Positions 4,749 to 27,867 of a stretch of DNA of 64,000 nt are shown piece after piece. The stretch's first letter is position 1; every line of letters starts with the position of its first letter. The stretch covers positions 4,650,001 to 4,714,000 of the forward strand of contig JANHCV010000001.1 in the NCBI GenBank assembly GCA_025594325.1, read 5' to 3'. The position numbers and the translations under genes were made by a program. Origin of the DNA: Blastocladiella emersonii ATCC 22665. Its lineage: Eukaryota; Fungi; Blastocladiomycota. The notes under the pieces are model-generated. The model was not told where the DNA came from, did not search any database, and saw only the letters and a list, made by a program, of their open reading frames with translations.

Positions 4749-4868
4749 ACGTTGCGAAAGCGAGAGGCGAGTCTTTTTTTTTTTGATCCTGTACATTACC
4801 TATACATCTTTCGTCTCTTGTATCTTGCTTCGTTCATTTACACTTGCTGGAGCGTGCAGGCTGAGCTG
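4439..4868 (+). repeat. Left arm of ~430 bp inverted duplication (GSIII 3' CDS plus 3' flank)
   Basis: Reverse complement matches 5147-5575 with 4 substitutions and a T11/A10 length difference that I could see. Coordinate sums are 10014 and 10015. Confidence 0.95.
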
Positions 4869-5146
4869 AGAACCACGCGATTTTTCACGCGGCGTCTGGC
4901 GCGCAAGTGCTGGCCGCGGGACGCGCTCCAAGCCTTCATCACCTTTTTGATCAAGTTGGCCCCGGCCCGCCGCGTCGGTTGTCCTGGTCGCTTCTCGCTT
5001 GATTTAACGCCGGCCTAGTCGTCAGCATCAACAATCATGTCTAACGCCGCCCAGCTTATCCAGCATTGAATAAACGCGCCGTGGCCCGCTCAAGTTGGTG
5101 CGGTCGCGTCGCGTTCTCGCGCGTAGGTCCAATTGATCCGAGGTCA

Positions 5147-5575
5147 CAGCTCAGCCTGCACGCTCCAGCAAGTGTAAATGAACGAAGCAGGATACAAGAG
5201 ACGAAAGATGTATAGGTAATGTACAGGATCAAAAAAAAAAGACTCGCCTCTCGCTTTCGCAACGTCTACTGGAACAGCAGCTCCGTGTACTTGGGCAGCG
5301 GCCAGAACTTGTCCGCAACCACCTGCTCGAGCGCGTCGGCGTGCACGCGGACCGCGTCCATGGCGGGCAGCAGCGCCGTGTCGGCGAGCTTGGCCTGTGC
5401 GACCGGATCGTCGCCCGCGGCGTTGACCTTGTTGATTGCCTGGTCGAGCTCGTCGACGGCCGTGCGCAGCCCGTTCAGGTGCGACGCGAGCGCGCCGACG
5501 GCCGCGACCTCGGCGCTCGCGTCGCACTCGATGCCATTGAGCGCGACGATCGTGTCGGCGAGCGACTTGCGGTAC
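5147..5575 (-). pseudogene. Inverted partial copy of the GSIII 3' end (last ~100 codons plus terminator region), no start codon
   Basis: The minus strand reads [20 protein letters not shown]...KYTELLFQ*. An in-frame TAG lies just upstream. Three nonsynonymous changes versus the parent (N>D, A>V, K>N). Confidence 0.9.
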
Positions 5576-7986: not shown

Positions 7987-9169
7987 GGCGCGGGACGCCT
8001 CGCCGCCGTCCCTCGAGTTCAGAAGCGGATTTTCCTTGCGGGCGATGGCCATGGTCACGGCTCCAACGTGGCCATCGTCCTTTCCACCATGGCCACGACG
8101 AGTCCGGGCTGGTGGCCACCTTCCGCTCCTCGGCCAGCTTCGAAACCTGGTCGTGGCCATCGGCGTGGAAACGTTGCTCCGTGTTGGATCAACGCGCCAC
8201 CTCGATTGACATGGGTGGTCCGATTGATTATTAGCGTCATATCACCGTGGCTTGCGACCCGCGTATATTTTTGGAAGGTCCCCAACCAAGTGATGGCGGC
8301 GCCAGGGCGGCGCGCATGACCGACTCCTGATCAGCTTTTCAATCACGCGCCGCGACGCGTCGCGTCGCCTCGTCGCCGATACCCGGCCGGAGGGTGTTAT
8401 CTCGAGGTTGCTGTATCGCTCGTTGTCGACCACCCGACTCGATGCTGCTCCCGGGAGCTGGTTTAGCTCGGCAGATGCTCGTGCTTGGCAACGCCACTCG
8501 CGCTGGCCACGATGGCCCTGTCGGTGGCAGGCCACCTTGCATGGTTCCGGACGCGTTTTTGCTCACGAGGTTGAACTGAATTATTCGCATGCGAGTGCAT
8601 CATCGATTCGGTTCGCCATTGCCAAGAGAACTATGACCAAGTAGAAGGCGATGGCCTCGCGGAGGAAGGCCACGCGTCGTCTTGGGCATCCTTCGAGCTC
8701 ACTTCACGATGGCCACGTCCGCACTGAAGACTTTGCGCCTCGATCAGGCCGACGATCACAGTCGATACATGACTTTTTTTTCGCTGCAGCGCATCACGTA
8801 TTTAGCAGCCATCTTGAATGAACTCCGCTGTTTACTCACTATGATTTAGACTCCTTCAAGAAATTGAGCGACTATGTTTCATCAAACAGACTGGTACAGA
8901 CTGATGATACTACCAAGGTAGAAAAGCTCAAACGTGCGGTGCGCTGGGAGCAGGGGTTTATTCTAAGAAGAGTGGGTGGCGCAAGACTTGGGAACCCGAT
9001 TCATTGGAGACGCGTCAAAGTATCATGTGAGCTCCGCGAGACGCGTCGCGATTTGTCTCGCGTCTCCCATCGCGAGAGAACGGCATGAGCCACCCTGCCA
9101 CCAACACTTTCCGGAATGAACCCGCTCGCACTCCTTGCAACCAAATCCATTCGCAAAGCATGATAGAAG

Positions 9170-12100
9170 ATGTCGAAACATGAATCAATAACCGTCGATC
9201 GAGCTGCGAGCCCGCCGGCGGGCGCCACGCCATGGTCCGGCGGTGGACACTATCACACACGGAGCAGCACAAGCCAGTCTGGGCAGCGGTCGCTCCTCGC
9301 GCGTCGCACTTCCCTCTTGAATCGCACAGCAAGCAACACGAGTAACGGGACCACCGCCACGGCGGATCGCGCCCAGGACGGACCGCCGCTACTCGGCGCG
9401 ATCCACTCCGGCACTCTGCATGGCAGCACGCGCGGGAGCTTCTCGGGGACTGGGCCGAGTACTCCTCCACCTCAGCCAGGCCCGTTCCCCAACCTGATTT
9501 GGCCCTCGACCGAGGACCAGTCTCGCGCGGTCCCCTCGCCGCGCGCGCTTTCAGAGCTTCGCGAGCAGTTCGTATCGGTACGTGACCACTCTCTGCTCTC
9601 GTTCGCCTCTGCTCGACTCGTACTGAATTAAGCAACTCGTTTCTCTAGAGCGACAACGATGGGTCTCCGCTTCTACCTGGCCCTGAATCTCTCGTACTCG
9701 TCGAGATCGATCCCATCGTAGGCGAGGAGCTCGTCCCCAAAGATACGCTTCAGCAATGGGACCCCTGCGCCCAGAACATCATCGCCTCGCTGACGGCTCC
9801 TCGTGTCGCCGTCGACTCCAAGGGTTCCGCCGTGGCGGACTACCGTCCATTGACGGACGCGAGCTCGGTGTCCTCTCAATCCACCGACCGCGACCTGCTG
9901 GGCCTCTGCCGCGACCACGAGTGGACGGAGCGACCGATCCCCGCGCACCGTCGTCCCGAAGCGCGCGTACGTGCCGTACCCGCGCCCGACGGCTGGATCC
10001 GCCTCAAGCTCCTCGAGTGCAACGTCATGGAGTCGCGCCAGCCAATTTTCCTGCAGCTCGCGCTTCACGACGAGACCAGCGGAGCCCAGCTCACGCAGGT
10101 CGTGCAGTTCGAGCTCAACACGCCGCACCACATGCAGCTTCTCGCGTCCTCGCGCGGCACGGCGCCGCACCTGCACGACACGCTCGCCTTCTTCCCGCTG
10201 TCGCTCGCGCAGCAGCCCGGCGTGATTCTCGTCGTGCGCGTCGACAAGGTGCTCGACAAGTCGTCGTCCTCGGACCGCGCGCAGTATGCAGCTGCGAGCG
10301 CGGCCAAGCTCGGCCTGTACCGCCAGTCGTGGGGCTACGCGATCGTGCCGTTCGGCCAGGTCACCTCGGGCCCGTCCGAGCTCCAGGTCCGCTCGATCAT
10401 GATGCGCAAGTCGCAGGTCCCGCTGCCGCAGCTGATCGCGGCCAGCTCGCCAACGAGCACGGGCGACGGTGCCTCGCCGGCGTCGCCAAAGGCGAGCCCG
10501 TGCGTGATCCGGTTCGAGTCGGCCATCGTCGACAACGAGCAGTCGCTCCCGCTCCTCTCGGTCCACGATCGCCTCGCTCGCCCGACCAGCACCGGCGCGA
10601 CCCCGGTGCAGGGCCTCGCGCATCACTTTGCGCCCGCCCTCGGCTCGGTGCAGCCGCTGTGCTCGTCCACCATCTCGCACTCGCTCTTCATCCGGCCGCA
10701 GCAGCTCGTGCAGAAGAAGGGCAAGGGTCGCAACATGACGTGCTGCGTCGAGGTGTGCAACCAGGCCATGGAACCAGTCGCGTCCATCGTCGGCCGCCCG
10801 CACGAGTCGGCCTGGAAGTCCAAGGCGTACACCAATGTCGCGTATCACGAGAAGGTAATTTCTTGAATCTCGCTTGCACAGTTCGTTGTCTCACGCCACC
10901 TCGGACTCTTGTCATTGTAGTCGCCGGTCATGGACGACGAGATCCAGTGCCGCCTGCTGCCGACTAGCGAGCCGCTCGTTCTGCGCTTCACCTTTTACCA
11001 CGTCAGCTGCAAGGACAAGCAGCCCGGCCAACTGGTGCGTCTCGGGTCGAGGTTACTCGAGGTGACTGGGCATGACTGACCGTCGCTCTCGTAGACGCTC
11101 GGCGGCTACGCGCACCTCCCGCTCCTGAACGCCGCCAACAAGTTCATCGACAACGGCGAGTACACGCTCCATGTCCACGTCGGCGATCCGCGCGAGTCAG
11201 GCCACCCTAGCCCCGACGGCGCGCACTCGTCGGGCAGCACCGAGTCGAGCAAGGACTCGTTCACGGTGGCCATCCACATCGAGAGCTCGCTCGTCGTGCA
11301 GGACCCTCACCTGGACGCGTTTGTCGCCGCGCCGCTCGAGCAGGCCGACCCGCTCGTCGTCCTCAACGCGCGCCTCGAGGAGCTCACCAAGTTCAACGTA
11401 CTCGTCCTCGATCGCGTGTTTGCGAAGCTCGGCCCGGTGGGCCCAGCTGGTTCGGCGCGAATCGTCGCGCACGACGCGGCCATGCGTGCTCTGCTTCACG
11501 TTTACCGCGTTCTCACGGACGATGCGGTTCGTCGCGGTGTCCCGGTCCCGTCTCTCGTCCACCGCTACGTGGCCACGATGCTCACGTCCGCGGACGCGCA
11601 CGCCGGCGTCACCAAGGCGTGGTGCACCATCCTCGAGACGTCCGCCCTCGCTCCGGCCTCGCCATCGACGGCGCAGTGGTCCGAGCTCGGACTCGGCGTC
11701 GCCGCTTCCGTGTTCGACTCGATCATCAAGAGCATGTCGATCGCGGCCAAGAGCTCGACGTGTGCCGAGCCCATCGACGTCGCAGCGATCCGTCGTCTCG
11801 TGTCGCTCATCTCGCCGCTCGGTGCGTTTCCTACTCAATCACTCCTCGCTCTTGCGCAAGCAAGAACTAACCGCGCTCCGTGTAGTTCACAAAAAGGCAT
11901 CCAGCGGCCTGAACATGGCCAAGGACTTGAACGTGTCGCTCGCGTACTTCATCCGCGACCTGGTCCCGCTGATCCCGATCGACGTGATCCTCGGCCTCGC
12001 CCGCCTGCACTCGAGCCCGATCGACGTAAAGAGCAACAGCACGCTGATTGCCCTCAAGTTCGACTTCCTGTCGATCCTGGCCGGCAGCGAGCACGCGATC

Positions 12101-15100
12101 CCGCTCGACGACATTGTGACGGACGTGGTCGCCTTCATGCAGCACCAGTCGGGCGACATTCGGTTGCTGGCGTGCTCGCTCATGCGCGACATCTTGGCCG
12201 TCCGCCGCGCGAGCGTTCCGCCGCCCATCATGCTCCACTTTGCAGACCTCGCCCTCGCACTGCTGCCGACGCTCACCCGGCCGACGTCGACTTCCGAGAC
12301 GCTTCTCCTGCGCACGGTCGCAATCACGGCGCTCCATTGCCTCGAGAAGCTCAGCTCGCTGCCGTGGACGACAGGCTGGCTCGAGTCCAAGTTTGAGCCG
12401 CTCGGCTGGATGCAGCGCCTGGCCATCATCGTCAACGACTTCCAAGTACGTCGCGCCGCTCCGTCGACCGCTCACGAAGCACGACTGATCTGGAACATGA
12501 GCACCTGTAGTACGCGTCCACGACTGCGCTCGTCGACCGGCTGACAATTGTTCAGCATCGAAGCCAAGTCGGCGGTGCCAAGGTGCGTCCATCACCTTGC
12601 CCACCCGCTCCGGCGATTCCTAACCCACGTTTCGCGCTGATTTCGTAGAAATTCCTCGAGGACTACTTCAAGACCGGCTCAACGGCGCTCATGCGGAACA
12701 AGCGGAGCAGCACCGGGCCCATCCTCATGAACCCGATGCCCGTGGCCGAGACGGCGAGCCAGGCGTCCAAGGTCGACGACCGGTCGATTGCCTCGGAGGT
12801 CGAGCTCGGGAACCAGGTCCTGCTGCGCGCGCTCGACGTGTGGGATGTGCTCGTCAAGCTCTTTGGCGAGAGCCACACGGACGCGCACCTCCAGTTCCTG
12901 CTGCAGGTGACGTGGGTGCCGATCTCGGACGAGGGGGTGATGCAGGTGCTCGGCCGCGTCATCAAGCTCATTGACAAGGACCCGGTCCTCGTGCTCAACA
13001 CGTACACGAACGAGCTCATCACGGCCATCCTGCGCAAGGCCAGCTCGGCGATCCCGGTCGTGCGCACCGCCGCCGGCCAGGTCCTGTTCGCCATGTTCCG
13101 CTCGTGCCACCGACTCCAGCAGTCGGCGGCCACGCCGGCCCTGCGCCGCGCCTTCGCCACGTTCCGGATCCACGTCACCGTGGCCATCGCGCAGTTCCAG
13201 GACGGCGGCCTCGAGAACATTGCCAAGTGCTGGGACGACATTGCCCTGCGGTGCGAGCACTGCAACGATCAGGCCTTCCGCGACACGGTGCGCGTCTCCA
13301 TGACTTGATCTCAGCGGTGATCGCTCACTCTGCTCCCGATGTAGATGCGCGCGTCGAGCGTGCTGCTCAGCGAGGTCATCCGCAACCAGATCAAGCTCGA
13401 GACGATCCCGGACCTCGAGTCGCGCCTCGACTGCTACCGCGAGATCGCGAACCGATACCATAACACGCCCGACATGCGGCTCTGCACGCTCGAGACTATG
13501 GTATGCGCCTATCCCAACCGGCTCGTTCGCGCCAATCTGACTCTCGTGTGGAACTGTAGGCGGGTCTCTACCGCGAGCAAGGGAACTATGTCGAGTCAGG
13601 CCTCGTGGAGCTTCATGCCGCGGCGCTCATCGCCGAGTACCTCGTCTCGCAGACGCCCAGGTACGTGGGACCCAAGGGCGCCAAGGACTTTGCCGCGTGC
13701 AACCCGAACGTGGCCGAGGAGGCTCTGCAGCCGTCAGTCAAGTCGGACGGCATCTTTTCGAGCGACGCGTTCTCGGAGGACGGGCTGCTCGTGTTCCTGA
13801 ACAAGGCCGTCGAGTCGTTCACGAAGGCCAGCTTCTTCGAGATGGTCAACGAGGTCAATAAGCTCGTGATCCCGGTGCTCGAGGCGCGCCGCGACTGGCA
13901 GGGCCTGTCCAACGTGCACCAGGCGCTGGCGACGACGTTCTCGACCCTCGTCGCGAAGCCCAACCGCATGATCGCCACGTACTACCGCGTGCGGTTCCTC
14001 GGCTCGGCGTGGGAGGAGAACAACGGCGTCGAGTTCATCTACCGCGAGAAGGGCGTCTGCGTGCTCCCCGAGTTCGTCTGCAAGCTCAAGGTAAGCATCT
14101 CCGCAGCTCTTGTGCCGCCGCATTGTCGCGCTAACCAACCACTGGCACTCTCGCGTGTAGGCCAGCTTCGCGTCACTCGGCAGCCGGTTCGAGGTGCTAC
14201 AGGACTCGGGCAAGATCGACGAGTCGAGGCTCGACGCGACGCGCGCGTACGTGCAGGTTACGCACGTTGAGCCCTACTTTGGGGACGCGGCCGTGTATCC
14301 GTCGGGGCCGCCGGCGTCCGTGTACGACCAGCATAACCGGCTCGCCTCGTTCCTGTACATGGTCCCGTTCACGGTCGGCGGCCGCGCGCACGGCGACATC
14401 GCGTCGCAGTACCTCCGCCAGGTGATCTGCCACACCGAGCGCCCGTTCCCGTACATCACGAAGCGGCTGCGCGTCGGCCGCCGCGAGGAGACGGTGCTCA
14501 ACCCGCTGCAAGTCAGCACGCAGGCGCTCAACGCGCGGTGCTCGCGGCTCAAGCAGCTGCTGCACGCGGTCCCCGTCGACGCCAAGTCGCTACAGATGGT
14601 GCTGTCGGGCTCGCTGCGGCCGCAGGTCAACTCGGGTCCGGCCGAGATTGCGCGCGTGTTCCTTTCGCCAACGCCGGCGCCAGGCCAGAACTCGCCCGTG
14701 TGCGCGTACAGTCCGGCCGACCTCGAGGAGCTCCGCGTCGCGTTCCGCACGTTCCTGCGGCTCAGCGAGGTCGGCGTCACGATGAACCGGCAGCTCATCT
14801 CGCACGGTACGTGTAATTGCTCTTGTTACCTCAGCTTCGTCGCTGACGCAGTCTGATCGTACAGATCAAGTCGGGTATCAGGAAGACCTCGAGAACGGCT
14901 TCCACGAGCTCTCCGAGCAGCTCCAGCCGCTCCTCCAGGCGACCTCGGCGCGGCAGAAACTCGCGCTCAAGTACGTGACCTTCTTCCTTCATCCGCGAGG
15001 TTCACTGCTGACTTGTTTCTGTTCGCCTAGCTCGGACATTGACGCGCCAACCAAGTCGGTTGTCGAGTTCCTTGGGTCGCAAGGCGACATTGCGAGTTTC

Positions 15101-15112
15101 TTGTTGAGCTAG
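9170..15112 (+). CDS. DOCK-family (zizimin, DOCK-C/D-like) Rho-GTPase GEF with C2/DHR-1 and DHR-2 domains; about 11 short introns
   Basis: Exon 1 is 9170-9577 and intron 1 is 9578-9648. DHR-1-like SPVMDDEIQCRLLP and TLGGYAHLPLL. DHR-2-like YREQGNYVESGLVELHAAALIAEYL, TYYRVRFLG, EFIYRE, YVQVTHVEPYF, LQMVLSGSLRPQVNSGP, DQVGYQEDL. No SH3 domain seen. Confidence 0.92.
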
Positions 15113-16397
15113 ACTATCAATGGATACACTGTATTGCTGAGTATCATGCAAAATCGCCGAGGTGACCCATGTCTCGCACCATCACGTGATAAATTGACGC
15201 GCAACGCGTGGTGCGAGACATTTTTCGAGCAAAGCGGACTCGAATCGCACAGGCTTCATCGAGCAATCCTCCTTCCCCAAGTTCGCTCTCAGAGCTCTAT
15301 GCAATCATAAACTCTTGGCACTAGCTGCAACCGACACTGCTCGACTGAACCCACCAATACATCACCATGGCTCCGCCGCTCGCGTCGTGGTTCTCGCGGG
15401 TCAACCGCATCCGCGGGACCATCTGGATCCTCAAGAACACGGTCATGCTGATCAATGTTCTATCGCTGGTACGGTTCAGCGAGCGGGCTGGCGGCTCAGG
15501 ACGGTGGGTAACACGGTGTAGGTCTCGTCGGTCGGGTTCTTTGCCGTGGGCATCTACGGCTACTCGGACAGCTCGGTCGTCGGCATCGTGTCCTCGTCGC
15601 TGCCGCTCGCGTGTATCATCCTCGGCATCATCGTAGCGCTCATCTCCCTCATTGGTACACGAACTCGTCGGAATCGCGTCGTCGCGACGGAGATCTGACA
15701 CTGCGACTTCCACAGGCGTGTTCTCGGTCGCAAACGAGTCGGCACTTTTCATCCGCGTCTACTTTGCGCTCCTGCTGCTCCTGATCCTCGCCGAGATCAT
15801 CATCGGCGGCGTGGCCTTCAGCCACAAGGACAACGTCGAGCTGTACCTGACGCAGGCGTGGACCAACGCCTACAAGACGGACAAGTCGACGATTGCGCGG
15901 CTGCAGGGGTTCTTCGGGTGCTGCGGGTTCCGGACCGTCGACGATATGGCGGTGCGCGACAAGTGCATGACCATGGTCCCGTGCTACACTAAGGTCAAGC
16001 AGCAGTTCCTGACGGGCCTTAACACCATGGCCACGGTCGCCGTCACGCTCGGCGTCATCGAGCTGTTCTGCCTCCTCGCCGCCGGCCTGCTCGTCTTCTT
16101 CTCGCGCCTGTCCGAGGACGCGCGCAACTCGGAGCTCCTCGAGGAGGCCCGCAAGCTCAGCCTCGCCGAGCAGGAGCGCGCCAAGTCGAAGCGGTACAAC
16201 TTCGAGACGCCGTTCGAGGACGGTGACGATTGAGCGCCGGACCGGTGGGCTCGCGATCACCATGGCCGCCGCCGAGCGGCCCCTGTTCATTTGTGATTCA
16301 TTCCTCCGATAACCAATACATCCACGTTCCCCAGATCAGATGTTTCTCGTTCAGCTTGCGGTACCGTGTAACGTGCTCTCACATCAAGGATCCGGCC
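9607..16397 (+). repeat. Left arm of ~6.8 kb inverted repeat
   Basis: Every ORF here has an identical mirror ORF with coordinate sum 35153 (e.g. 9832..10866 / 24287..25321 and 15652..16233 / 18920..19501). Boundaries were checked base by base. Confidence 0.97.
15367..16233 (+). CDS. Tetraspanin (copy 1); two short introns
   Basis: Four hydrophobic segments; large extracellular loop with GFFGCCGF (CCG motif) and two further Cys (RDKC...PC). Confidence 0.9.
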
Positions 16398-16574
16398 GAC
16401 GCGTCGAAGGCGAACGCGTGAAGTGTGCGCCAGCTCGCGTGCACTCGGGCGAGTACTGCCTCGCGCTGACTCAAGAACGACCGAGATCGAACAGCGTGTA
16501 CGAATCAAGCAAGTGGATCATCGCAAATCATGGTTTATTACACGTTCACTCTACGGGTATCAATCACACGCCGC

Positions 16575-18449
16575 CTACACGCGCTTGTTGCGCGTCGGCG
16601 ACGACGGGCGCTTCTGGTGCTGGCCCTGTGGCTGCGCCGACGTCGGGCGCGCATTGACAGCCGGGGTCGCCTGCGCCTGCTTCGTGACGGGCGCCGGCGA
16701 CGACGCGCGCTTGGCCTGGGGCGACGCGGGACGCGCGGCCGCGGGAGCCTGCAGCGGCTTGGCCTGGGGCGCCTGAGCTTTGGGCGCGGCGACGTTGCCG
16801 CCCACGACGGGGCGCCGCTGCTTGGCCGGGGCCGCCGCGGCCTGCTTCGCGGGCGGCGAGACGGGGCGGGCGGCGGCCTGGACTCCGGGCTTCGCGGCAA
16901 CCGGCGTGACCTTCTGCTGCTGCTGCGCGGCGGGAACAGCCTGCTTGGTGGGCGGCGACACGGGGCGAGCAGCGGCGTAGGCCACGGGCTTCGCGGCGAC
17001 CGGTGCGGCCTTCTGCTGCTGCTGGGCGACAGGAGCAGCCTGCTTGACGGGCGGCGAGACAGGGCGAGCGGCGGCCTGGGTCGCCGCTGGGACGGCCTTC
17101 TTGGCCTGCTGCGGCGCATTCTTCTTGGACTGGACCGACGGAGGCGCCGTGGCGGCAGCCTGCTGCTGCTGCTGCTTGCGGATCGGGGCCATCATAGTGT
17201 TGTACTGGTTCTTGGCCGCGGCGGCGAACTGCTGCGACGACGGGATGCGGGGGACGGGGAGCTCGGCCGCGAGCCACTGCGGGACGCGCTCCATGTCGAA
17301 GAGCCACGCGCCCGAGTGGAACGCGTCGTCGTGGTGCTCGGGTACGGGCGTCGCGCGGTACACGGTCGGCGGGTGGTTGTGCTTGACGGGGACGGGCGTG
17401 GCCGTCTTCGAGGATTTGCCGGCGAGCTGCTGCTGCTGCTGCTGCTTGGGCGCGGCCGAGACGGGCTTCGCGGTGGCCTTGGCCGCGGTCGTGGTCGTAG
17501 ACGCCGGGCGCGCGACAGGCGCGGTGGTCGGGCGAGCCGCGGGAGCGGGGGCCGGGGCGGCGGCGGCGGGCGCCTTGCCCTGGAAGTACTGCGGCTCGGC
17601 CGCGTACGCCGCGCGCTTCTGCTCCTGTTCGGCCTTGACCTTGGCCTGGTACACCTGCAGGTGGTTCTGGTGCGCGACGGCGGCCTGGGCGGTCGCGGGA
17701 CGCGCCGTCAGGAACTCGCCCTTCTGCATCGCGGCAAATTGCGCCTCGAGCATGGCGAGCATCGCGGCCGTAGCGGCCGACTGCGCGCGCACGGCGGGAG
17801 ACGGGGCGGGCGCGGCGGCCTTGGTCTGCTGCACCTGCTGCTTAGCGGGAGCCGCGGCGGGAGCAGGCGCGGCCGCCGTCTTCTGCTGCTGCTGCTTCTG
17901 CTGGACGGGCGCGGTGACCGGCTTAGGCGCCGGCGACTGCTGCTGCTGCTGCTGCTTGGCCGGCGCCGCAGCGGGGACGGGCGTGGCCTTGGCCTGCGAC
18001 TGCTGCTTCGGGGCCGGGGTGGCCGACTGCGCGCGCGCAGCGGGGGCCGCGGCGGGAGCCGGCGCAGCCTTGGTCTGCTGCTGCTTCTGCTGGAAGGGCG
18101 CGGCGGCCGGCTTGACCGACGACGACTGCGGGCGGGCAGCGACTGGGGCGGGCGCGGCGGCGGCGACCGTGGCGGCGGGGGTCGCCGACTTCTGCGCCTG
18201 CTGGGGCGACGCCGGGCGGGAGCCGGGCTTCTTGGCCTCCTGCTGCTGCTGCTGCTGAACGGGCGCGGCGGCGGCGGCCTGGGCCTGGGCGGGAACCGGC
18301 TTCGCAGCGGCAGCGGCGGCGGCGGCCTGCTTGGTGGCGGGCGCCGACGACTGCGGGCGCGCGGCGGCCTGGGTCTGCTGGCCCTTGGCGCTGTTCGCCT
18401 GGAGCGGGGCAGCCTTGGGCTGGGCGGACGAGATCTGGGTGCGGCCCAT
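16575..18449 (-). CDS. 624-aa intronless Gln/Ala/Pro-rich low-complexity repeat protein in the palindrome spacer
   Basis: Long ORF with GC3-biased codons, polyQ tracts, recurrent RP-x-S/T motifs and three ~34-aa ARPVSPP repeats. Short unique core HDDAFHSGAWLFDMERVPQWLAAELPVPRIP. Confidence 0.8.
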   Translation of the reverse strand: MGRTQISSAQPKAAPLQANSAKGQQTQAAARPQSSAPATKQAAAAAAAAKPVPAQAQAAAAAPVQQQQQQEAKKPGSRPASPQQAQKSATPAATVAAAAPAPVAARPQSSSVKPAAAPFQQKQQQTKAAPAPAAAPAARAQSATPAPKQQSQAKATPVPAAAPAKQQQQQQSPAPKPVTAPVQQKQQQQKTAAAPAPAAAPAKQQVQQTKAAAPAPSPAVRAQSAATAAMLAMLEAQFAAMQKGEFLTARPATAQAAVAHQNHLQVYQAKVKAEQEQKRAAYAAEPQYFQGKAPAAAAPAPAPAARPTTAPVARPASTTTTAAKATAKPVSAAPKQQQQQQLAGKSSKTATPVPVKHNHPPTVYRATPVPEHHDDAFHSGAWLFDMERVPQWLAAELPVPRIPSSQQFAAAAKNQYNTMMAPIRKQQQQQAAATAPPSVQSKKNAPQQAKKAVPAATQAAARPVSPPVKQAAPVAQQQQKAAPVAAKPVAYAAARPVSPPTKQAVPAAQQQQKVTPVAAKPGVQAAARPVSPPAKQAAAAPAKQRRPVVGGNVAAPKAQAPQAKPLQAPAAARPASPQAKRASSPAPVTKQAQATPAVNARPTSAQPQGQHQKRPSSPTRNKRV

Positions 18450-18755
18450 GGTGATGGATGCGTGTTACAGGTGGAGGGTGATCCGAACGAGCAGGTCGAG
18501 GAAGGGCGGGGAGGCGGGCTCGCTTTATACGCCGCGGCCGGCCGTACTGCATGCACCGAGTGTGTGTGTGGTGCTCGATCAAAAGCGTCTCCCGCACAGC
18601 TGACTGACTGGCAGTGCGGAGGCAGTCGGTTCGCTGCGGAGTGGCGTCGACGCGTGCACCGGCCGGAAACGTGACCGCGTCGAGTGTGAGACATCGTGTG
18701 AGACAGTCGTGTTACTTCAAGCCACTCGCACATCTGAACGAGCTTTTGATGTATT

Positions 18756-21700
18756 GGCCGGATCCTTGATGTGAGAGCACGTTACACGGTACCGCAAGCT
18801 GAACGAGAAACATCTGATCTGGGGAACGTGGATGTATTGGTTATCGGAGGAATGAATCACAAATGAACAGGGGCCGCTCGGCGGCGGCCATGGTGATCGC
18901 GAGCCCACCGGTCCGGCGCTCAATCGTCACCGTCCTCGAACGGCGTCTCGAAGTTGTACCGCTTCGACTTGGCGCGCTCCTGCTCGGCGAGGCTGAGCTT
19001 GCGGGCCTCCTCGAGGAGCTCCGAGTTGCGCGCGTCCTCGGACAGGCGCGAGAAGAAGACGAGCAGGCCGGCGGCGAGGAGGCAGAACAGCTCGATGACG
19101 CCGAGCGTGACGGCGACCGTGGCCATGGTGTTAAGGCCCGTCAGGAACTGCTGCTTGACCTTAGTGTAGCACGGGACCATGGTCATGCACTTGTCGCGCA
19201 CCGCCATATCGTCGACGGTCCGGAACCCGCAGCACCCGAAGAACCCCTGCAGCCGCGCAATCGTCGACTTGTCCGTCTTGTAGGCGTTGGTCCACGCCTG
19301 CGTCAGGTACAGCTCGACGTTGTCCTTGTGGCTGAAGGCCACGCCGCCGATGATGATCTCGGCGAGGATCAGGAGCAGCAGGAGCGCAAAGTAGACGCGG
19401 ATGAAAAGTGCCGACTCGTTTGCGACCGAGAACACGCCTGTGGAAGTCGCAGTGTCAGATCTCCGTCGCGACGACGCGATTCCGACGAGTTCGTGTACCA
19501 ATGAGGGAGATGAGCGCTACGATGATGCCGAGGATGATACACGCGAGCGGCAGCGACGAGGACACGATGCCGACGACCGAGCTGTCCGAGTAGCCGTAGA
19601 TGCCCACGGCAAAGAACCCGACCGACGAGACCTACACCGTGTTACCCACCGTCCTGAGCCGCCAGCCCGCTCGCTGAACCGTACCAGCGATAGAACATTG
19701 ATCAGCATGACCGTGTTCTTGAGGATCCAGATGGTCCCGCGGATGCGGTTGACCCGCGAGAACCACGACGCGAGCGGCGGAGCCATGGTGATGTATTGGT
19801 GGGTTCAGTCGAGCAGTGTCGGTTGCAGCTAGTGCCAAGAGTTTATGATTGCATAGAGCTCTGAGAGCGAACTTGGGGAAGGAGGATTGCTCGATGAAGC
19901 CTGTGCGATTCGAGTCCGCTTTGCTCGAAAAATGTCTCGCACCACGCGTTGCGCGTCAATTTATCACGTGATGGTGCGAGACATGGGTCACCTCGGCGAT
20001 TTTGCATGATACTCAGCAATACAGTGTATCCATTGATAGTCTAGCTCAACAAGAAACTCGCAATGTCGCCTTGCGACCCAAGGAACTCGACAACCGACTT
20101 GGTTGGCGCGTCAATGTCCGAGCTAGGCGAACAGAAACAAGTCAGCAGTGAACCTCGCGGATGAAGGAAGAAGGTCACGTACTTGAGCGCGAGTTTCTGC
20201 CGCGCCGAGGTCGCCTGGAGGAGCGGCTGGAGCTGCTCGGAGAGCTCGTGGAAGCCGTTCTCGAGGTCTTCCTGATACCCGACTTGATCTGTACGATCAG
20301 ACTGCGTCAGCGACGAAGCTGAGGTAACAAGAGCAATTACACGTACCGTGCGAGATGAGCTGCCGGTTCATCGTGACGCCGACCTCGCTGAGCCGCAGGA
20401 ACGTGCGGAACGCGACGCGGAGCTCCTCGAGGTCGGCCGGACTGTACGCGCACACGGGCGAGTTCTGGCCTGGCGCCGGCGTTGGCGAAAGGAACACGCG
20501 CGCAATCTCGGCCGGACCCGAGTTGACCTGCGGCCGCAGCGAGCCCGACAGCACCATCTGTAGCGACTTGGCGTCGACGGGGACCGCGTGCAGCAGCTGC
20601 TTGAGCCGCGAGCACCGCGCGTTGAGCGCCTGCGTGCTGACTTGCAGCGGGTTGAGCACCGTCTCCTCGCGGCGGCCGACGCGCAGCCGCTTCGTGATGT
20701 ACGGGAACGGGCGCTCGGTGTGGCAGATCACCTGGCGGAGGTACTGCGACGCGATGTCGCCGTGCGCGCGGCCGCCGACCGTGAACGGGACCATGTACAG
20801 GAACGAGGCGAGCCGGTTATGCTGGTCGTACACGGACGCCGGCGGCCCCGACGGATACACGGCCGCGTCCCCAAAGTAGGGCTCAACGTGCGTAACCTGC
20901 ACGTACGCGCGCGTCGCGTCGAGCCTCGACTCGTCGATCTTGCCCGAGTCCTGTAGCACCTCGAACCGGCTGCCGAGTGACGCGAAGCTGGCCTACACGC
21001 GAGAGTGCCAGTGGTTGGTTAGCGCGACAATGCGGCGGCACAAGAGCTGCGGAGATGCTTACCTTGAGCTTGCAGACGAACTCGGGGAGCACGCAGACGC
21101 CCTTCTCGCGGTAGATGAACTCGACGCCGTTGTTCTCCTCCCACGCCGAGCCGAGGAACCGCACGCGGTAGTACGTGGCGATCATGCGGTTGGGCTTCGC
21201 GACGAGGGTCGAGAACGTCGTCGCCAGCGCCTGGTGCACGTTGGACAGGCCCTGCCAGTCGCGGCGCGCCTCGAGCACCGGGATCACGAGCTTATTGACC
21301 TCGTTGACCATCTCGAAGAAGCTGGCCTTCGTGAACGACTCGACGGCCTTGTTCAGGAACACGAGCAGCCCGTCCTCCGAGAACGCGTCGCTCGAAAAGA
21401 TGCCGTCCGACTTGACTGACGGCTGCAGAGCCTCCTCGGCCACGTTCGGGTTGCACGCGGCAAAGTCCTTGGCGCCCTTGGGTCCCACGTACCTGGGCGT
21501 CTGCGAGACGAGGTACTCGGCGATGAGCGCCGCGGCATGAAGCTCCACGAGGCCTGACTCGACATAGTTCCCTTGCTCGCGGTAGAGACCCGCCTACAGT
21601 TCCACACGAGAGTCAGATTGGCGCGAACGAGCCGGTTGGGATAGGCGCATACCATAGTCTCGAGCGTGCAGAGCCGCATGTCGGGCGTGTTATGGTATCG

Positions 21701-24700
21701 GTTCGCGATCTCGCGGTAGCAGTCGAGGCGCGACTCGAGGTCCGGGATCGTCTCGAGCTTGATCTGGTTGCGGATGACCTCGCTGAGCAGCACGCTCGAC
21801 GCGCGCATCTACATCGGGAGCAGAGTGAGCGATCACCGCTGAGATCAAGTCATGGAGACGCGCACCGTGTCGCGGAAGGCCTGATCGTTGCAGTGCTCGC
21901 ACCGCAGGGCAATGTCGTCCCAGCACTTGGCAATGTTCTCGAGGCCGCCGTCCTGGAACTGCGCGATGGCCACGGTGACGTGGATCCGGAACGTGGCGAA
22001 GGCGCGGCGCAGGGCCGGCGTGGCCGCCGACTGCTGGAGTCGGTGGCACGAGCGGAACATGGCGAACAGGACCTGGCCGGCGGCGGTGCGCACGACCGGG
22101 ATCGCCGAGCTGGCCTTGCGCAGGATGGCCGTGATGAGCTCGTTCGTGTACGTGTTGAGCACGAGGACCGGGTCCTTGTCAATGAGCTTGATGACGCGGC
22201 CGAGCACCTGCATCACCCCCTCGTCCGAGATCGGCACCCACGTCACCTGCAGCAGGAACTGGAGGTGCGCGTCCGTGTGGCTCTCGCCAAAGAGCTTGAC
22301 GAGCACATCCCACACGTCGAGCGCGCGCAGCAGGACCTGGTTCCCGAGCTCGACCTCCGAGGCAATCGACCGGTCGTCGACCTTGGACGCCTGGCTCGCC
22401 GTCTCGGCCACGGGCATCGGGTTCATGAGGATGGGCCCGGTGCTGCTCCGCTTGTTCCGCATGAGCGCCGTTGAGCCGGTCTTGAAGTAGTCCTCGAGGA
22501 ATTTCTACGAAATCAGCGCGAAACGTGGGTTAGGAATCGCCGGAGCGGGTGGGCAAGGTGATGGACGCACCTTGGCACCGCCGACTTGGCTTCGATGCTG
22601 AACAATTGTCAGCCGGTCGACGAGCGCAGTCGTGGACGCGTACTACAGGTGCTCATGTTCCAGATCAGTCGTGCTTCGTGAGCGGTCGACGGAGCGGCGC
22701 GACGTACTTGGAAGTCGTTGACGATGATGGCCAGGCGCTGCATCCAGCCGAGCGGCTCAAACTTGGACTCGAGCCAGCCTGTCGTCCACGGCAGCGAGCT
22801 GAGCTTCTCGAGGCAATGGAGCGCCGTGATTGCGACCGTGCGCAGGAGAAGCGTCTCGGAAGTCGACGTCGGCCGGGTGAGCGTCGGCAGCAGTGCGAGG
22901 GCGAGGTCTGCAAAGTGGAGCATGATGGGCGGCGGAACGCTCGCGCGGCGGACGGCCAAGATGTCGCGCATGAGCGAGCACGCCAGCAACCGAATGTCGC
23001 CCGACTGGTGCTGCATGAAGGCGACCACGTCCGTCACAATGTCGTCGAGCGGGATCGCGTGCTCGCTGCCGGCCAGGATCGACAGGAAGTCGAACTTGAG
23101 GGCAATCAGCGTGCTGTTGCTCTTTACGTCGATCGGGCTCGAGTGCAGGCGGGCGAGGCCGAGGATCACGTCGATCGGGATCAGCGGGACCAGGTCGCGG
23201 ATGAAGTACGCGAGCGACACGTTCAAGTCCTTGGCCATGTTCAGGCCGCTGGATGCCTTTTTGTGAACTACACGGAGCGCGGTTAGTTCTTGCTTGCGCA
23301 AGAGCGAGGAGTGATTGAGTAGGAAACGCACCGAGCGGCGAGATGAGCGACACGAGACGACGGATCGCTGCGACGTCGATGGGCTCGGCACACGTCGAGC
23401 TCTTGGCCGCGATCGACATGCTCTTGATGATCGAGTCGAACACGGAAGCGGCGACGCCGAGTCCGAGCTCGGACCACTGCGCCGTCGATGGCGAGGCCGG
23501 AGCGAGGGCGGACGTCTCGAGGATGGTGCACCACGCCTTGGTGACGCCGGCGTGCGCGTCCGCGGACGTGAGCATCGTGGCCACGTAGCGGTGGACGAGA
23601 GACGGGACCGGGACACCGCGACGAACCGCATCGTCCGTGAGAACGCGGTAAACGTGAAGCAGAGCACGCATGGCCGCGTCGTGCGCGACGATTCGCGCCG
23701 AACCAGCTGGGCCCACCGGGCCGAGCTTCGCAAACACGCGATCGAGGACGAGTACGTTGAACTTGGTGAGCTCCTCGAGGCGCGCGTTGAGGACGACGAG
23801 CGGGTCGGCCTGCTCGAGCGGCGCGGCGACAAACGCGTCCAGGTGAGGGTCCTGCACGACGAGCGAGCTCTCGATGTGGATGGCCACCGTGAACGAGTCC
23901 TTGCTCGACTCGGTGCTGCCCGACGAGTGCGCGCCGTCGGGGCTAGGGTGGCCTGACTCGCGCGGATCGCCGACGTGGACATGGAGCGTGTACTCGCCGT
24001 TGTCGATGAACTTGTTGGCGGCGTTCAGGAGCGGGAGGTGCGCGTAGCCGCCGAGCGTCTACGAGAGCGACGGTCAGTCATGCCCAGTCACCTCGAGTAA
24101 CCTCGACCCGAGACGCACCAGTTGGCCGGGCTGCTTGTCCTTGCAGCTGACGTGGTAAAAGGTGAAGCGCAGAACGAGCGGCTCGCTAGTCGGCAGCAGG
24201 CGGCACTGGATCTCGTCGTCCATGACCGGCGACTACAATGACAAGAGTCCGAGGTGGCGTGAGACAACGAACTGTGCAAGCGAGATTCAAGAAATTACCT
24301 TCTCGTGATACGCGACATTGGTGTACGCCTTGGACTTCCAGGCCGACTCGTGCGGGCGGCCGACGATGGACGCGACTGGTTCCATGGCCTGGTTGCACAC
24401 CTCGACGCAGCACGTCATGTTGCGACCCTTGCCCTTCTTCTGCACGAGCTGCTGCGGCCGGATGAAGAGCGAGTGCGAGATGGTGGACGAGCACAGCGGC
24501 TGCACCGAGCCGAGGGCGGGCGCAAAGTGATGCGCGAGGCCCTGCACCGGGGTCGCGCCGGTGCTGGTCGGGCGAGCGAGGCGATCGTGGACCGAGAGGA
24601 GCGGGAGCGACTGCTCGTTGTCGACGATGGCCGACTCGAACCGGATCACGCACGGGCTCGCCTTTGGCGACGCCGGCGAGGCACCGTCGCCCGTGCTCGT

Positions 24701-25546
24701 TGGCGAGCTGGCCGCGATCAGCTGCGGCAGCGGGACCTGCGACTTGCGCATCATGATCGAGCGGACCTGGAGCTCGGACGGGCCCGAGGTGACCTGGCCG
24801 AACGGCACGATCGCGTAGCCCCACGACTGGCGGTACAGGCCGAGCTTGGCCGCGCTCGCAGCTGCATACTGCGCGCGGTCCGAGGACGACGACTTGTCGA
24901 GCACCTTGTCGACGCGCACGACGAGAATCACGCCGGGCTGCTGCGCGAGCGACAGCGGGAAGAAGGCGAGCGTGTCGTGCAGGTGCGGCGCCGTGCCGCG
25001 CGAGGACGCGAGAAGCTGCATGTGGTGCGGCGTGTTGAGCTCGAACTGCACGACCTGCGTGAGCTGGGCTCCGCTGGTCTCGTCGTGAAGCGCGAGCTGC
25101 AGGAAAATTGGCTGGCGCGACTCCATGACGTTGCACTCGAGGAGCTTGAGGCGGATCCAGCCGTCGGGCGCGGGTACGGCACGTACGCGCGCTTCGGGAC
25201 GACGGTGCGCGGGGATCGGTCGCTCCGTCCACTCGTGGTCGCGGCAGAGGCCCAGCAGGTCGCGGTCGGTGGATTGAGAGGACACCGAGCTCGCGTCCGT
25301 CAATGGACGGTAGTCCGCCACGGCGGAACCCTTGGAGTCGACGGCGACACGAGGAGCCGTCAGCGAGGCGATGATGTTCTGGGCGCAGGGGTCCCATTGC
25401 TGAAGCGTATCTTTGGGGACGAGCTCCTCGCCTACGATGGGATCGATCTCGACGAGTACGAGAGATTCAGGGCCAGGTAGAAGCGGAGACCCATCGTTGT
25501 CGCTCTAGAGAAACGAGTTGCTTAATTCAGTACGAGTCGAGCAGAG
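18756..25546 (-). repeat. Right arm of ~6.8 kb inverted repeat
   Basis: Reverse complement of 9607-16397; all mirrored ORF translations in the track are identical. Confidence 0.97.
18920..19786 (-). CDS. Tetraspanin (copy 2, identical to copy 1)
   Basis: Mirror of 15367-16233 within the inverted repeat. Confidence 0.88.
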
Positions 25547-25618
25547 CCGAACGAAAGTAGATAGACATACTGACACTGACAAAACCTCGCCGGGCATCAC
25601 AGCTCGCATCACGACCAT
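20041..25618 (-). CDS. DOCK GEF copy 2: exons 2 onward identical to copy 1, with a candidate different first exon (25618-25571)
   Basis: Mirror of 9649-15112 occupies 25504-20041. A GTATGT donor at 25570 and the AG ending at 25505 give a 66-nt intron, joining MVVMRAVMPGEVLSVS in frame (phase 0) to exon 2. The first exon is inferred. Confidence 0.7.
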
Positions 25619-25939
25619 AGCGCGCACGTTCAGGACCGCCACAACCCACTCTTCAGGCTGCAAGACGTACACGCGCAAGAAGTATGTGTTCACAAAACTC
25701 CGGAAACTGTTCAACCATCTGTTCGTCGCGCGAGCGGCCGAACTAAGTGGCTACGCCTTCGAAACTGGCGCCAAGTGGTCGTGTTGTGGAGCCGCCAACC
25801 TTCAAGAACGTGAACGTCCTGTCACTTGCGGTCCGCTGACACGGTTATACCTTTGGCGGCGCTGGTCTAGAAAGTAAGCCAGCTTCACTCTATGTTATTA
25901 ACGTGTAACATGACGTTGAGGTGGGACTGTCTCACGTTC

Positions 25940-26475
25940 TGCCAGGGCGCAGTCAACGACGCGGTCGAGAAGTTGATCTGTGCGTGGGCTGTGGCAGGCG
26001 GGCTGGCGGTCGTCGCGGCGATGCAGGAAGCCCCGGTCGTCGATAAAGACATGGCGGTGGATGGGCCAGCATCGTCAGCGCCGCGGAGGCGGCACTACTC
26101 ACTGCTGCTCGTCCTCAACCGGAGCCTCGCCAACGCGCATGACGCGGCCGTGCACGGGCTGCTCAAGTCCTGTAACGACCCACTGACCGTCGCCCTGGTC
26201 CTCAACGGGCTCGCCGCGGCATCTCCGCAGCCGCAGCTGACACGGCTCTTGCGCGGGTGACGTCGCTGTTGGATGCGCTCCCCAACTGGACCAACGCGCA
26301 GGCCATAGATACGGACTCAAACGAGGGCGCAGACCTCGACGCCGACGTCAAGTCCTTGCTCCCGCACGCCGCGCAGGTCCTGCTGCACATCCTGCAAAAC
26401 ACGCGCAACCTGATCCCTGTTGCGTGTCGTTCATGTGGCCACGACCGCGGTGATCAATCATCTGATCTCGCGTGA
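25940..26475 (+). pseudogene. Possible degraded gene fragment, product unknown
   Basis: Coding-like ORFs 25892..26260 and 26257..26475 abut with a frame change near 26255. No recognisable domain. Confidence 0.25.
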
Positions 26476-27075
26476 GCCGCCCGCAATCCCTCGCTCCCGC
26501 GCCGCCGCACCCCGCTGCGGCGCGCCCTGCTTTGTTATCCATTCTCCCCTCTCCCCGTCTTGGGTTCGGGGCCGAAGGCAGGAATAGACATCCCTGACTA
26601 CTTGTCTCCCGCCTCCTTCTGTCGGCATCAACAATCCCGGCGGCGCCGCCGCGCGTCCGCGTCAAGCTGCTGCGTCTCGCCACCGCGACACTTGAAAGGG
26701 TATGCAACAGTAATGTCAAGGCCTTCAGTGCCGCCAGGAAGCGTGTAGAATTCAGCGGGAAACAACTGCGTGGAGCGTATCACGCTGAGTGCTCCGTTTA
26801 TGCCGACGCCGAATCGCGCATGACCGAGAATCGCATCGCGTCCCGCGGTATGACTAGTGTACACCACCACAATTCCCGAAAATTGTGAATGCGGACCCAC
26901 AATTCGACATGCGATTGTGATTGCGGTTTGTGGAAAACCTGGAGGCGACGCGAGGAACGCGCTCACGTGCAGTCATGTGAGTGCTTAAGGACGACTTGAC
27001 GCGAGTGACAGGCAGAATCGGCACACGAGAGACTGACGGAGGGATGCCACAGAAAAGAAGGTGTGTACTCATTCA

Positions 27076-27867
27076 TCACACGTTAACAATATCGGCGAGC
27101 TCATCGATGTCAAGCTCCATCTGGTCCTCGCAACTGGCCGCCATGAAGGTGTCAGGATGAGGCATCTCGTCAAGCGAGATGGGGAGGGCGGCCAGATCGA
27201 AGGCCGTGGTTGACCGACGTCGAAGCGATCGAGGAGATGTTGGTGATGACGCGGTTTGCGAGGGCCGGGTGCGCGAGGCTGACGATGGGCGCCTCGAGTT
27301 CCAGGAGGGCGATGGGCTTGGAGCCCGCCTCGATGATCTGCGCCTGCTCGGCGTCCGACAGGGTCGAGAAGTCGTCCTTGACCGTGTTGCCCGAGACGAG
27401 GCCGAAGTCGGCGAGCTGGTGGTACACGTTGGCCTTGGACGGCCCGACCTCCTCAATGTCGTTGCCCCTGTTTCCTCGCCCGCGTCCTCCATCTCGGTGT
27501 CGCTGTCGGTCTCAATGCCGCACATCTCATCCTCAATCGGCGATATAGCCGCGGCCGCGACTGGCGGGGGCGCCAGCGTCGCAACGAGACGGCGAGGCTG
27601 CCGGCGGGCGCGCAAGGGCCGGCCGCCGCGCTTACTCACCGTGCGCAAAGCATTGCCGGCCACCGTGCTCCGAGAACGACGGCGAGGCCCGTCGGCGGGG
27701 AGTGCATTGGCGCTGTGTTCTGCACGCGGCGATGGTGAAGAGGACGAGCGTCGATGGTGCGCTCGACGGGCGCCGATGGCGAGCGTGGACGAGCGGGCAT
27801 CGCCGCGGCGGCAGCCCGAAGTCGACAGACAGCGGCGTTGGTTGTCGGGGAGGCGATCGAGTTTCAC
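27076..27867 (-). pseudogene. Acidic hypothetical gene with two compensating frameshifts (~27465 and ~27210)
   Basis: Coding-like codon usage switches from the frame of 27076..27867 into that of 27170..27427 (GNDIEEVGPSKANVYHQLADFGLVSG...) and back (TTAFDLAALPISLDEMP). Confidence 0.45.

Follow-up and report, generated by a model that had tools for sequence, protein, structure and literature searches.

In the classical view, large palindromes whose arms are perfect are treated as peculiar to the sex chromosomes of mammals, and in Candida as substrates for rearrangement. Inverted duplications can arise when replication switches template or a break is repaired by fold-back, as in FoSTeS/MMBIR, DUP-TRP/INV-DUP and the inverted-repeat-mediated events of yeast. 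In plastid and herpesvirus-type genomes, recombination keeps identical inverted repeats homogeneous, and the unique segment that they enclose occurs in two orientations (flip-flop isomers). The palindromes described on mammalian sex chromosomes include P1-P8 of the human Y, 26 on the human X (PMC8327919) and others on the mouse X (bioRxiv 10.1101/800185). The human X study applied an 8-kb minimum arm length, with one 6.5-kb case admitted by orthology (PMC8327919). In the fungus Candida albicans, long repeats of 65-6499 bp form mostly inverted, ORF-containing pairs of high identity (Todd et al. 2019, PMC6591007), which serve as substrates for inversions, for changes in copy number and for loss of heterozygosity (PMC6591007).

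Here, a 16-kb nuclear locus of the water mould-like fungus Blastocladiella emersonii (strain ATCC 22665) is described which is a real, fixed inverted segmental duplication (palindrome). Structures of this kind are known already, chiefly from the sex chromosomes of mammals, but none has been described before in B. emersonii.

Structure of the palindrome and its support in reads

The palindrome lies 4.6 Mb inside a 5.1-Mb contig of the PacBio HiFi assembly GCA_025594325.1, in an analysed window of 64,000 nucleotides from which Ns are absent (Table 1). A first-pass annotation had placed the arms at 9607-16397 and 18756-25546 with a constant coordinate sum of 35153 and no net indel, and this is correct to the base: the perfect inverted run extends over 6791 bp with 0 mismatches and 0 indels, and the sum holds throughout both arms. 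The spacer of 2358 bp between the 6.8-kb arms, with its one gene, was likewise borne out by the base-by-base check and by the deposited annotation. An inverted repeat search of the window returned one inverted pair, 9589-16411 / 18742-25564. Comparison of the window with itself by blastn found no further arm copy within the window and, together with local alignment of the 1-kb flanks and the spacer halves, no inverted homology inside the spacer and no diverged homology past about 50 nt outside the arms. No tRNA or Rfam features were found at the arm borders. A separate palindrome of 433 nt, 5 kb away, has an arm divergence of 1.4%, as against 0 in 6791 for the 6.8-kb arms.

Table 1. Features of the palindromic locus, in window coordinates.
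Feature	Position	Strand	Remarks
Candidate left DOCK exon 1	9170..9577	+	136 codons, S/T-rich; outside arm; phase 0 at donor GTACGT (9578-9583)
Outer degenerate edge	9560..9606	+	Partner 25547-25593; 14/18 ungapped matches beside arm, 5-nt indel, then aligned donors and last exon-1 codons
Left arm, perfect	9607..16397	+	3' part of DOCK intron 1 to DOCK stop, tetraspanin gene, 164 nt past tetraspanin stop codon
Left DOCK body, exon 2 onward	9649..15112	+	DOCK-C2 (DHR-1) and DHR-2 lobes A-C; intron 1 = 9578-9648
Left tetraspanin gene, H9P43_001770	15367..16233	+	250 aa
Inner degenerate edge	16398..16411	+	Partner 18742-18755; 8/14 match
Spacer, unique	16398..18755		2358 bp, ~71% GC
Spacer gene	16575..18449	-	624 aa, Ala/Gln/Pro/Lys-rich, 33-aa (99-nt) repeats; one annotated gene
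Right arm, perfect reverse complement of left arm	18756..25546	-	Base-by-base check
Right tetraspanin gene, identical product	18920..19786	-	Annotation; identity from perfect arms
Right DOCK copy	20041..25618	-	16-codon exon 1 (25618-25571) outside arm; donor GTATGT 25570-25565; intron 1 to 25505; exon 2 from 25504

The assembly was built from about 185x HiFi reads with a mean length of 10.5 kb, exceeding one arm (the PacBio run is named in PMC9730499). Raw data were consulted as Logan k-mer contigs of three public runs (X1, HiFi-like; X2 and X3, short-read-like; k-1 = 30 nt), which collapse the arms and can drop variants, leaving room for rare differences between arms. In X1, the arm is a single collapsed contig of exactly 6791 bp, with its first base mapping to 9607 and its last to 16397, and with a depth of 255, which is 2.3x that of the spacer contig (112.5) and 1.8x that of other, unrelated long contigs (124-149). 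The spacer contig of 2418 bp (2358+30+30) covers 16368-18785, entering the arm by 30 nt at each end; X2 and X3 each independently yielded contigs beginning at 16368 and ending at 18785, and on the right-arm side the contigs of all three runs stop at 18785, 30 nt (k-1) into the arm. Arm depth is 70.6 vs about 23-36 in X2 and 8.5-9.4 vs 3-4.5 in X3. At the outer-right junction 25546/25547, every sampled 31-mer was found in X1, X2 and X3. Of the junctions on which the first-pass annotation had hung the reality of the palindrome (18755/18756 and 25546-25555), 18755/18756 and 25546/25547 are present in reads of the three runs, as is the other inner junction, and in place of the halved per-copy depth that it had named as a warning sign, the collapsed arm has about twice the single-copy depth.

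The assembly or amplification chimera that had been put forward as the main alternative is rejected, because the inner junctions and 25546/25547 occur in reads and the collapsed arm stands at about 2x depth. Perfect identity is suspicious in itself, and the assembly paper makes no mention of palindromes and tells of the manual removal of duplicated contigs, all of which would suit an artefact of assembly or library, be it a chimera formed by fold-back, a repeat that was collapsed or expanded, or polishing that made the arms identical. However, the arm was recovered as one 6791-bp unit at about twofold depth in independent k-mer contigs of three runs, the same arm end abuts the spacer at both spacer ends, words spanning the junction of right arm and right flank occur in every run, and a fold-back read would not yield a bounded arm joined on both sides to unique DNA 4.6 Mb inside a contig of 5.1 Mb; an artefact is considered very improbable. 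The same holds, slightly more strongly, for a diploid that has the arm in single copy and is heterozygous for an inverted spacer, the two versions having been mis-joined into a palindrome during assembly. A k-mer graph would then likewise put both spacer ends beside the inner end of the arm, and the removal of haplotigs by purge_dups implies that some heterozygosity exists, but such an inversion predicts equal depth of arm and spacer, whereas the arm is seen at 2.3x the spacer in X1 and at least 2x in X2 and X3; moreover, the spacer unitig enters the arms by 30 nt with no earlier branch, and the junction of right arm and right flank exists. Although the layout is formally TIR-like, the chance that a mobile element or composite transposon bearing the spacer gene has the arms as its terminal inverted repeats is negligible: the arms are made of host genes (DOCK and tetraspanin), there is neither a transposase nor a target-site duplication (the outer borders have no direct repeat), the relationship between the outer flanks is an inverted rather than a direct one, and no further copy occurs in the window, with the tetraspanin product found on a single contig.

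Gene content and the two first exons of DOCK

Pfam and the deposited annotation agree with the earlier assignment of a DOCK GEF and a tetraspanin to each arm, transcribed inward; in the annotation, each arm carries DOCK followed by tetraspanin, and the spacer one gene. Pfam matched the DHR-2 lobes A, B and C of the first arm gene at E 1e-16 to 1e-24, while DOCK-C2 (DHR-1) had its start below the cut-off on the ORF fragment, yet was called when the full product was used. Among solved structures, DOCK6/7/8 and DOCK9/10 come closest. The gene is predicted to encode a DOCK-C/D-like GEF of the Rho-family GEF type. The tetraspanin matches PF00335 at 58.4 bits vs a gathering cut-off of 32.1. A search of relatives for an orthologous locus turned up nothing but a Coelomomyces lativittatus tetraspanin with 56% identity, which lies on a contig of 2 kb.

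In the spacer gene, a separate TATAAA stands about 75 nt 5' of the ATG and an AATAAA past the stop. No Pfam family was found in its protein, and a homologue search with the 624-aa sequence was swamped by low-complexity words, to the extent that even the spacer protein itself was unrecovered. A longer plus-strand ORF of 714 aa (16530-18674) was set aside as a candidate for the spacer gene, being an R/G/L-rich antisense shadow of the minus-strand gene.

The arm border falls within DOCK intron 1, and the DOCK copies consequently differ in their first exon, which has 136 codons in the left copy and 16 in the right. Since the frame of the left exon 2 is open from 9649 with no ATG, the start codon cannot be within the arm. 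The candidate left exon 1 is missing from the deposited model, which begins at 9659, and the two deposited DOCK models, of 1565 and 1548 aa, disagree in where they start. The splice donors of the two copies align, GTACGT and GTATGT differing only at a degenerate position. Full-length DOCK relatives have 175-210 residues ahead of the part homologous to exon 2, and the left 136-codon exon shows weak collinear similarity to the N-termini of the full-length relatives P0003 and P0004 (BLASTP E = 0.012); when the N-termini of the relatives were compared with both flanks by tblastn, nothing significant was matched. From its length and these collinear weak motifs, the left copy with its long first exon looks ancestral. 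It is speculation that the spacer gene once had a 5'-UTR intron to which the right-flank donor belonged (promoter capture), against which stands the TATA box that the spacer gene has of its own.

The doubled dosage of both arm genes suggested by the first-pass annotation would apply in simple form to the tetraspanin alone, which is duplicated whole; the spacer isomers and read-through dsRNA that it also suggested may be further consequences of the palindrome. The DOCK copies are not simple dosage duplicates, because the arm border in intron 1 gives them differing promoters and first exons.

Age and origin of the duplication

The perfect arms are adjoined by short degenerate edges. At the outer edge, the 14/18 matches exceed the maximum of 13 in 37,636 null offsets, and an anchored 50-nt gapped alignment reaches about 47 nt (P = 4e-4). 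Another DOCK intron also begins GTACGTGACC, and since intron 5' ends resemble each other in the B. emersonii genome, some of the outer similarity may be generic, or may represent homeology at the place where a template switch happened. At the inner edge, the matches have a P of about 0.02 and the longer anchored 50-nt alignment is not significant (P = 0.24); all six mismatches are transitions, five of them in CpG of the left version. Diverged homology at this edge is only suggestive.

Short diverged homology directly beside the perfect arms favours, short of proof, the arm-to-arm gene conversion that had been proposed earlier, and an older duplication whose arms are held identical in this way is accordingly the reading judged probable here. 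The left DOCK copy would be the parental gene, because it has the long first exon, and the right copy a 5'-truncated duplicate set between the spacer and the right flank, where it would have gained a first exon of 16 codons and upstream DNA new to it, and kept a working splice donor. The duplication may then be older than perfect arms imply, with intrachromosomal conversion, in which a break in one arm is repaired from the other, keeping the arms letter-identical, and with a few tens of terminal bases on either side escaping conversion and diverging. The outcome would be two DOCK-C/D-type Rho-family GEF isoforms with a common body and different promoters and N-termini, alongside two identical tetraspanin genes. 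There is no sign of GC-biased conversion, since arm GC (0.60-0.66) is no higher than that of the surrounding sequence.

Zero differences and sharp borders are equally expected from a very young duplication, and the degenerate edges are short (14-47 nt). A very recent inverted duplication by template switch or fold-back, possibly within the 70-year-old culture line, would need no gene conversion; the arms would be identical for want of time to diverge, and the near-matches at the borders would be homeologous switch sites or the product of error-prone synthesis. The 0 differences in 6791 bp, the sharp borders and the lack of homology past about 50 nt all suit such an event, as does the history of the strain, in culture since 1951, and the alike intron 5' ends could have served as switch sites. 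However, about 25-30% divergence and a 5-nt indel in 47 nt beside a perfect block of 6.8 kb are hard to obtain from a single recent event, the donor site is kept in both copies, and the junctions occur both in short-read libraries of earlier date and in the HiFi library made later, so that a very recent origin is considered rather unlikely.

Implications

A read-supported case in an early-diverging, flagellated fungus carries the phenomenon of large perfect palindromes to a distant lineage, and the small, HiFi-sequenced genome makes conversion, flipping and origin measurable directly from existing reads. One GEF body under two different promoters and N-termini constitutes a clean natural experiment, in which the copy-specific first exons let the expression of each DOCK copy be read apart despite identical bodies. 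For users of the assembly, short-read mapping to the arm genes is ambiguous and the starts of the DOCK models are inconsistent. More tentatively, the locus may be one instance of a genome-wide habit, with dozens of inverted duplications that bear genes and have their cores held perfectly identical by unusually active arm-to-arm gene conversion. Were this so, sex-chromosome palindromes would have an autosomal counterpart in a fungus, and the palindromes would also yield paralogues with swapped first exons and promoters, like the two DOCK copies, as well as invertible gene cassettes.

Comparison with known systems

As in duplications formed by template switching or fold-back, an inverted copy lies near the original with a spacer between them, and two junctions are novel, with a short stretch of imperfect homology at a junction; unlike in those, no clean microhomology was found at the B. 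emersonii junctions. The identical inverted repeats flanking a unique segment resemble those of plastid and herpesvirus-type genomes, although these are small multicopy genomes and the B. emersonii palindrome is a single nuclear locus, known in one spacer orientation.

The likeness to the long repeats of Candida albicans is that of a fungal nuclear, high-identity, ORF-bearing pair, the arms exceeding the minimum of 65 bp for such repeats. In contrast to those, the host belongs to the phylum Blastocladiomycota and no rearrangement has yet been tied to the repeat, and unlike the distant repeat pairs of C. albicans, the short spacer (2.4 kb) makes this a true local palindrome.

Mammalian sex-chromosome palindromes differ in host, B. 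emersonii being a fungus with no known sex chromosome, and in gene content, with signalling and membrane genes in the place of testis gene families. The B. emersonii arm border also cuts a gene, so that the copies differ in their first exon, and concerted evolution is hinted at indirectly, by the diverged homology immediately outside the perfect arms. The arms, at 6.79 kb, are shorter than the 8 kb of PMC8327919, which is a size convention and not a mechanistic feature. Against the threshold of at least 99% arm identity in that study, identity is 100% over 6791 bp, and the unique spacer and protein-coding arm genes that it looks for are present. The B. emersonii locus thereby shares with the mammalian palindromes kilobase-scale inverted arms of >99.9% identity around a unique spacer, with protein-coding genes in both arms and spacer.

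Structure of the palindrome and its support in reads

An inverted-repeat search of 8000-27500 returned a single inverted pair (9589-16411 / 18742-25564). Base-by-base comparison at a constant coordinate sum of 35153 delimits its perfect part as 9607-16397 versus 18756-25546, that is 6791 bp with 0 mismatches and 0 indels, leaving a spacer of 2358 bp (16398-18755) between the arms. The window contains 0 Ns. The arm and spacer coordinates proposed in the first-pass annotation, and its claim of no net indel, were thereby matched to the base. When the window is aligned to itself (blastn), the only inverted homology besides the large palindrome is a small palindrome at 4439-5575.

The published assembly of B. 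emersonii ATCC 22665 was produced with the La Jolla Assembler from 605,547 PacBio HiFi reads (mean length 10.5 kb, ~185x), cleaned with purge_dups and by removal of duplicated contigs by hand, and polished with Pilon using 65-bp Illumina GAIIx reads (PMC9730499). Tandem duplication is discussed in the genome paper, and both 'inverted' and 'palindrom' are absent from its text (PMC9730499). Read support was taken from Logan contigs, assembled at k = 31 from the raw reads without use of the published assembler and aligned here to 13100-18950; they may lose variants and, as k-mer contigs, cannot show which way round the spacer lies between the flanks. The spacer is present in three public runs of the same sample (X1, X2 and X3), all from one strain. 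X1 is presumably the HiFi run because of its long contigs and high depth, and X2 and X3 are presumably short reads because their contigs are short and their depth is low.

The arm contig in X1 is exactly 6791 bp long at a depth of 255. The final 3298 bases match 13100-16397 with 0 differing letters and end at 16397, so that base 1 of the contig is 9607; this contig is both arms collapsed to one unit, with branch points that coincide exactly with the two arm borders. The spacer contig of the same run (2418 bp, or 2358 + 30 + 30; depth 112.5) spans 16368-18785 and is the spacer plus k-1 arm bases at either end. Unrelated long X1 contigs have depths of 124-149, and against these single-copy references the arm is 1.8x as deep as the other contigs and 2.3x as deep as the spacer. 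X2 and X3 each independently contain contigs starting at 16368 and contigs ending at 18785, with arm depths of 70.6 in X2 (other contigs ~23-36, spacer pieces 7-21.5) and 8.5-9.4 in X3 (spacer pieces 3-4.5). The outer-right junction (25546/25547) was queried with 60 bases in which all 31-mers cross it, and 3/3 sampled words were found in X1, X2 and X3. A heterozygous inversion of the spacer next to a single-copy arm is excluded because such a locus would give a 1:1 depth ratio, whereas the arm is observed at ~2x. The first-pass annotation had named junction support and arm depth as the test of its palindrome: the reads contain both novel junctions, and arm depth corresponds to two copies.

Genes of the arms, spacer and flanks

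Deposited gene models of the palindrome, converted to window coordinates, with the genes of the two flanks
Gene	Position	Strand	Product
Amino-acid permease, left flank	start 7601	-	
DOCK, left	9659-15112	+	1565 aa
Tetraspanin, left	15367-16233	+	250 aa
Spacer gene	16575-18449	-	624 aa
Tetraspanin, right	18920-19786	-	250 aa
DOCK, right	20041-25618	-	1548 aa
Unnamed gene, right flank	end at 27170		

Inward transcription of both arms, proposed from the sequence in the first pass, agrees with the deposited strands, and the proposed arm content of a DOCK GEF and a tetraspanin was confirmed by domains on ORF fragments. These comprise DHR-2 lobes A, B and C and the start of DOCK-C2 for the DOCK gene, and a Tetraspanin domain scoring 58 bits against a cut-off of 32. 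The closest solved structures to the DHR-2 fragments are DOCK6/7/8 and DOCK9/10. The arm DOCK is thus predicted to be a DOCK-C/D-like GEF, and its sequence is consistent with a predicted Rac/Cdc42-type specificity.

The spacer gene is a minus-strand ORF encoding a product that is rich in Ala, Gln, Pro and Lys and contains 33-aa repeats; a single database entry matches this product exactly, on contig JANHCV010000001.1 (5.14 Mb) of GCA_025594325.1 at ~4.66 Mb. With its own TATAAA ~75 nt upstream of the ATG and an AATAAA past the stop, the gene forms a self-contained unit. A longer ORF on the plus strand of the spacer was rejected as a gene, being an antisense shadow of the minus-strand gene. At 16817-17113 and 17850-18129 the gene carries tandem repeats of 99 nt (33 aa) together with further diverged repeats, which encode reiterated A-R-P-V-S-P-P-x-K-Q-A-like units. 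Searches for a family of the product found none and were saturated by low-complexity words. A tandem unit of 12-13 nt (GTGTGAGACAGTC, 2.3 copies) also occurs in the spacer at 18684-18712, ~45 nt from the right arm border.

Division of the DOCK gene by the outer border

The two deposited DOCK models share identical gene bodies and disagree at their 5' ends. The frame of exon 2 is open from 9649, right behind a polypyrimidine tract and AG at 9647-9648, and lacks an ATG, which requires translation to start in an exon further upstream. The perfect arm starts 42 nt upstream of this acceptor, i.e. within intron 1, and the donor and first exon are predicted to be supplied separately by either flank. 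On the left, a 136-codon S/T-rich ORF (9170-9577), which opens with an ATG one codon behind a stop, leads in phase 0 into a donor GTACGT (9578-9583). On the right, a 16-codon exon from the annotated ATG at 25618 likewise joins a donor GTATGT (25570-25565) in phase 0. The resulting intron 1 would be 71 nt on the left and 66 nt on the right, in keeping with the remaining introns of the gene (GTRNGT donors, CTRAC-like branch sites, ~70-90 nt). The deposited left start (ATG 9659) is probably a misprediction, because its reading frame differs from that of exon 2 and runs into a stop after 20 codons; the in-phase 136-codon exon with its GTACGT donor is a better candidate for the left first exon.

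A profile-free search with an exon-2 fragment recovered two full-length relatives, P0003 (1970 aa) and P0004 (1789 aa), which carry 175-210 residues ahead of the part homologous to DOCK exon 2. The left 136-codon exon is collinear with their N-termini via two short motifs (a GH-RT-SS...RTASN stretch and GPF..LI), with weak statistics (BLASTP E = 0.012); searching both flanks with the relatives' N-termini, as a tblastn control, gave nothing significant. Accordingly, the left DOCK is regarded, with moderate confidence, as the probable parental copy, and the right DOCK as a 5'-replaced duplicate.

Borders of the arms and the case for gene conversion

Local alignments of 1 kb found no homology beyond the arms. 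At the outer border, 14/18 of the first bases outside the arms match, compared with a maximum of 13 across 37,636 null offsets in the same flanks. With one 5-nt gap the alignment runs through both donors into the final exon-1 codons, ~47 nt in total (anchored alignment score, P = 4e-4), and the left and right intron-1 donors differ at the Y position only. At the inner border, 16398-16411 and 18742-18755 match at 8/14 positions (P ~0.02), and a 50-nt anchored alignment is not significant (P = 0.24). The six inner-border mismatches are exclusively transitions, and five coincide with a CpG in the left version; this looks as if CpG deamination had acted in one copy, although 14 bases are too few for certainty.

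A single very recent duplication event would account for the perfect arms. However, diverged edges of ~70-78% identity beside a perfect 6.8-kb block are not expected from such an event, and this arrangement, in which the degenerate edges span a few tens of bases, is the main ground for favouring an older duplication that would be continually homogenised by arm-to-arm gene conversion, with conversion unable to reach the extreme edges. The small palindrome, 5 kb from the large one, has 433-nt arms (4439-4871 and 5144-5575) around a 272-nt spacer. Its arms differ by 5 substitutions and 1 indel (98.6% identity), so inverted duplicates of the region do accumulate differences; at this divergence the large arms would show ~80 differing sites, against 0 observed. 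The argument for conversion is nevertheless weakened because the degenerate edges are short and because intron 5' ends resemble one another in the B. emersonii genome, another DOCK intron sharing its first ten bases with left intron 1.

Comparison with known palindromes and long repeats

Literature linking Blastocladiella nuclear DNA to inverted repeats was sought and none was found. In mammalian sex-chromosome palindromes, arms that are >99% identical surround a unique spacer, genes lie in both arms and spacer, and arm-to-arm conversion and spacer inversions occur (PMC8327919). The B. emersonii palindrome resembles these in form, although its arms are slightly under the 8-kb size convention applied to them (PMC8327919); its membership among palindromes of this type would be by form, the defining feature there being cross-species evidence. 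Its closest fungal analogue is the long repeats of Candida albicans, which are mostly inverted and ORF-bearing and drive inversions, CNV and LOH (PMC6591007).
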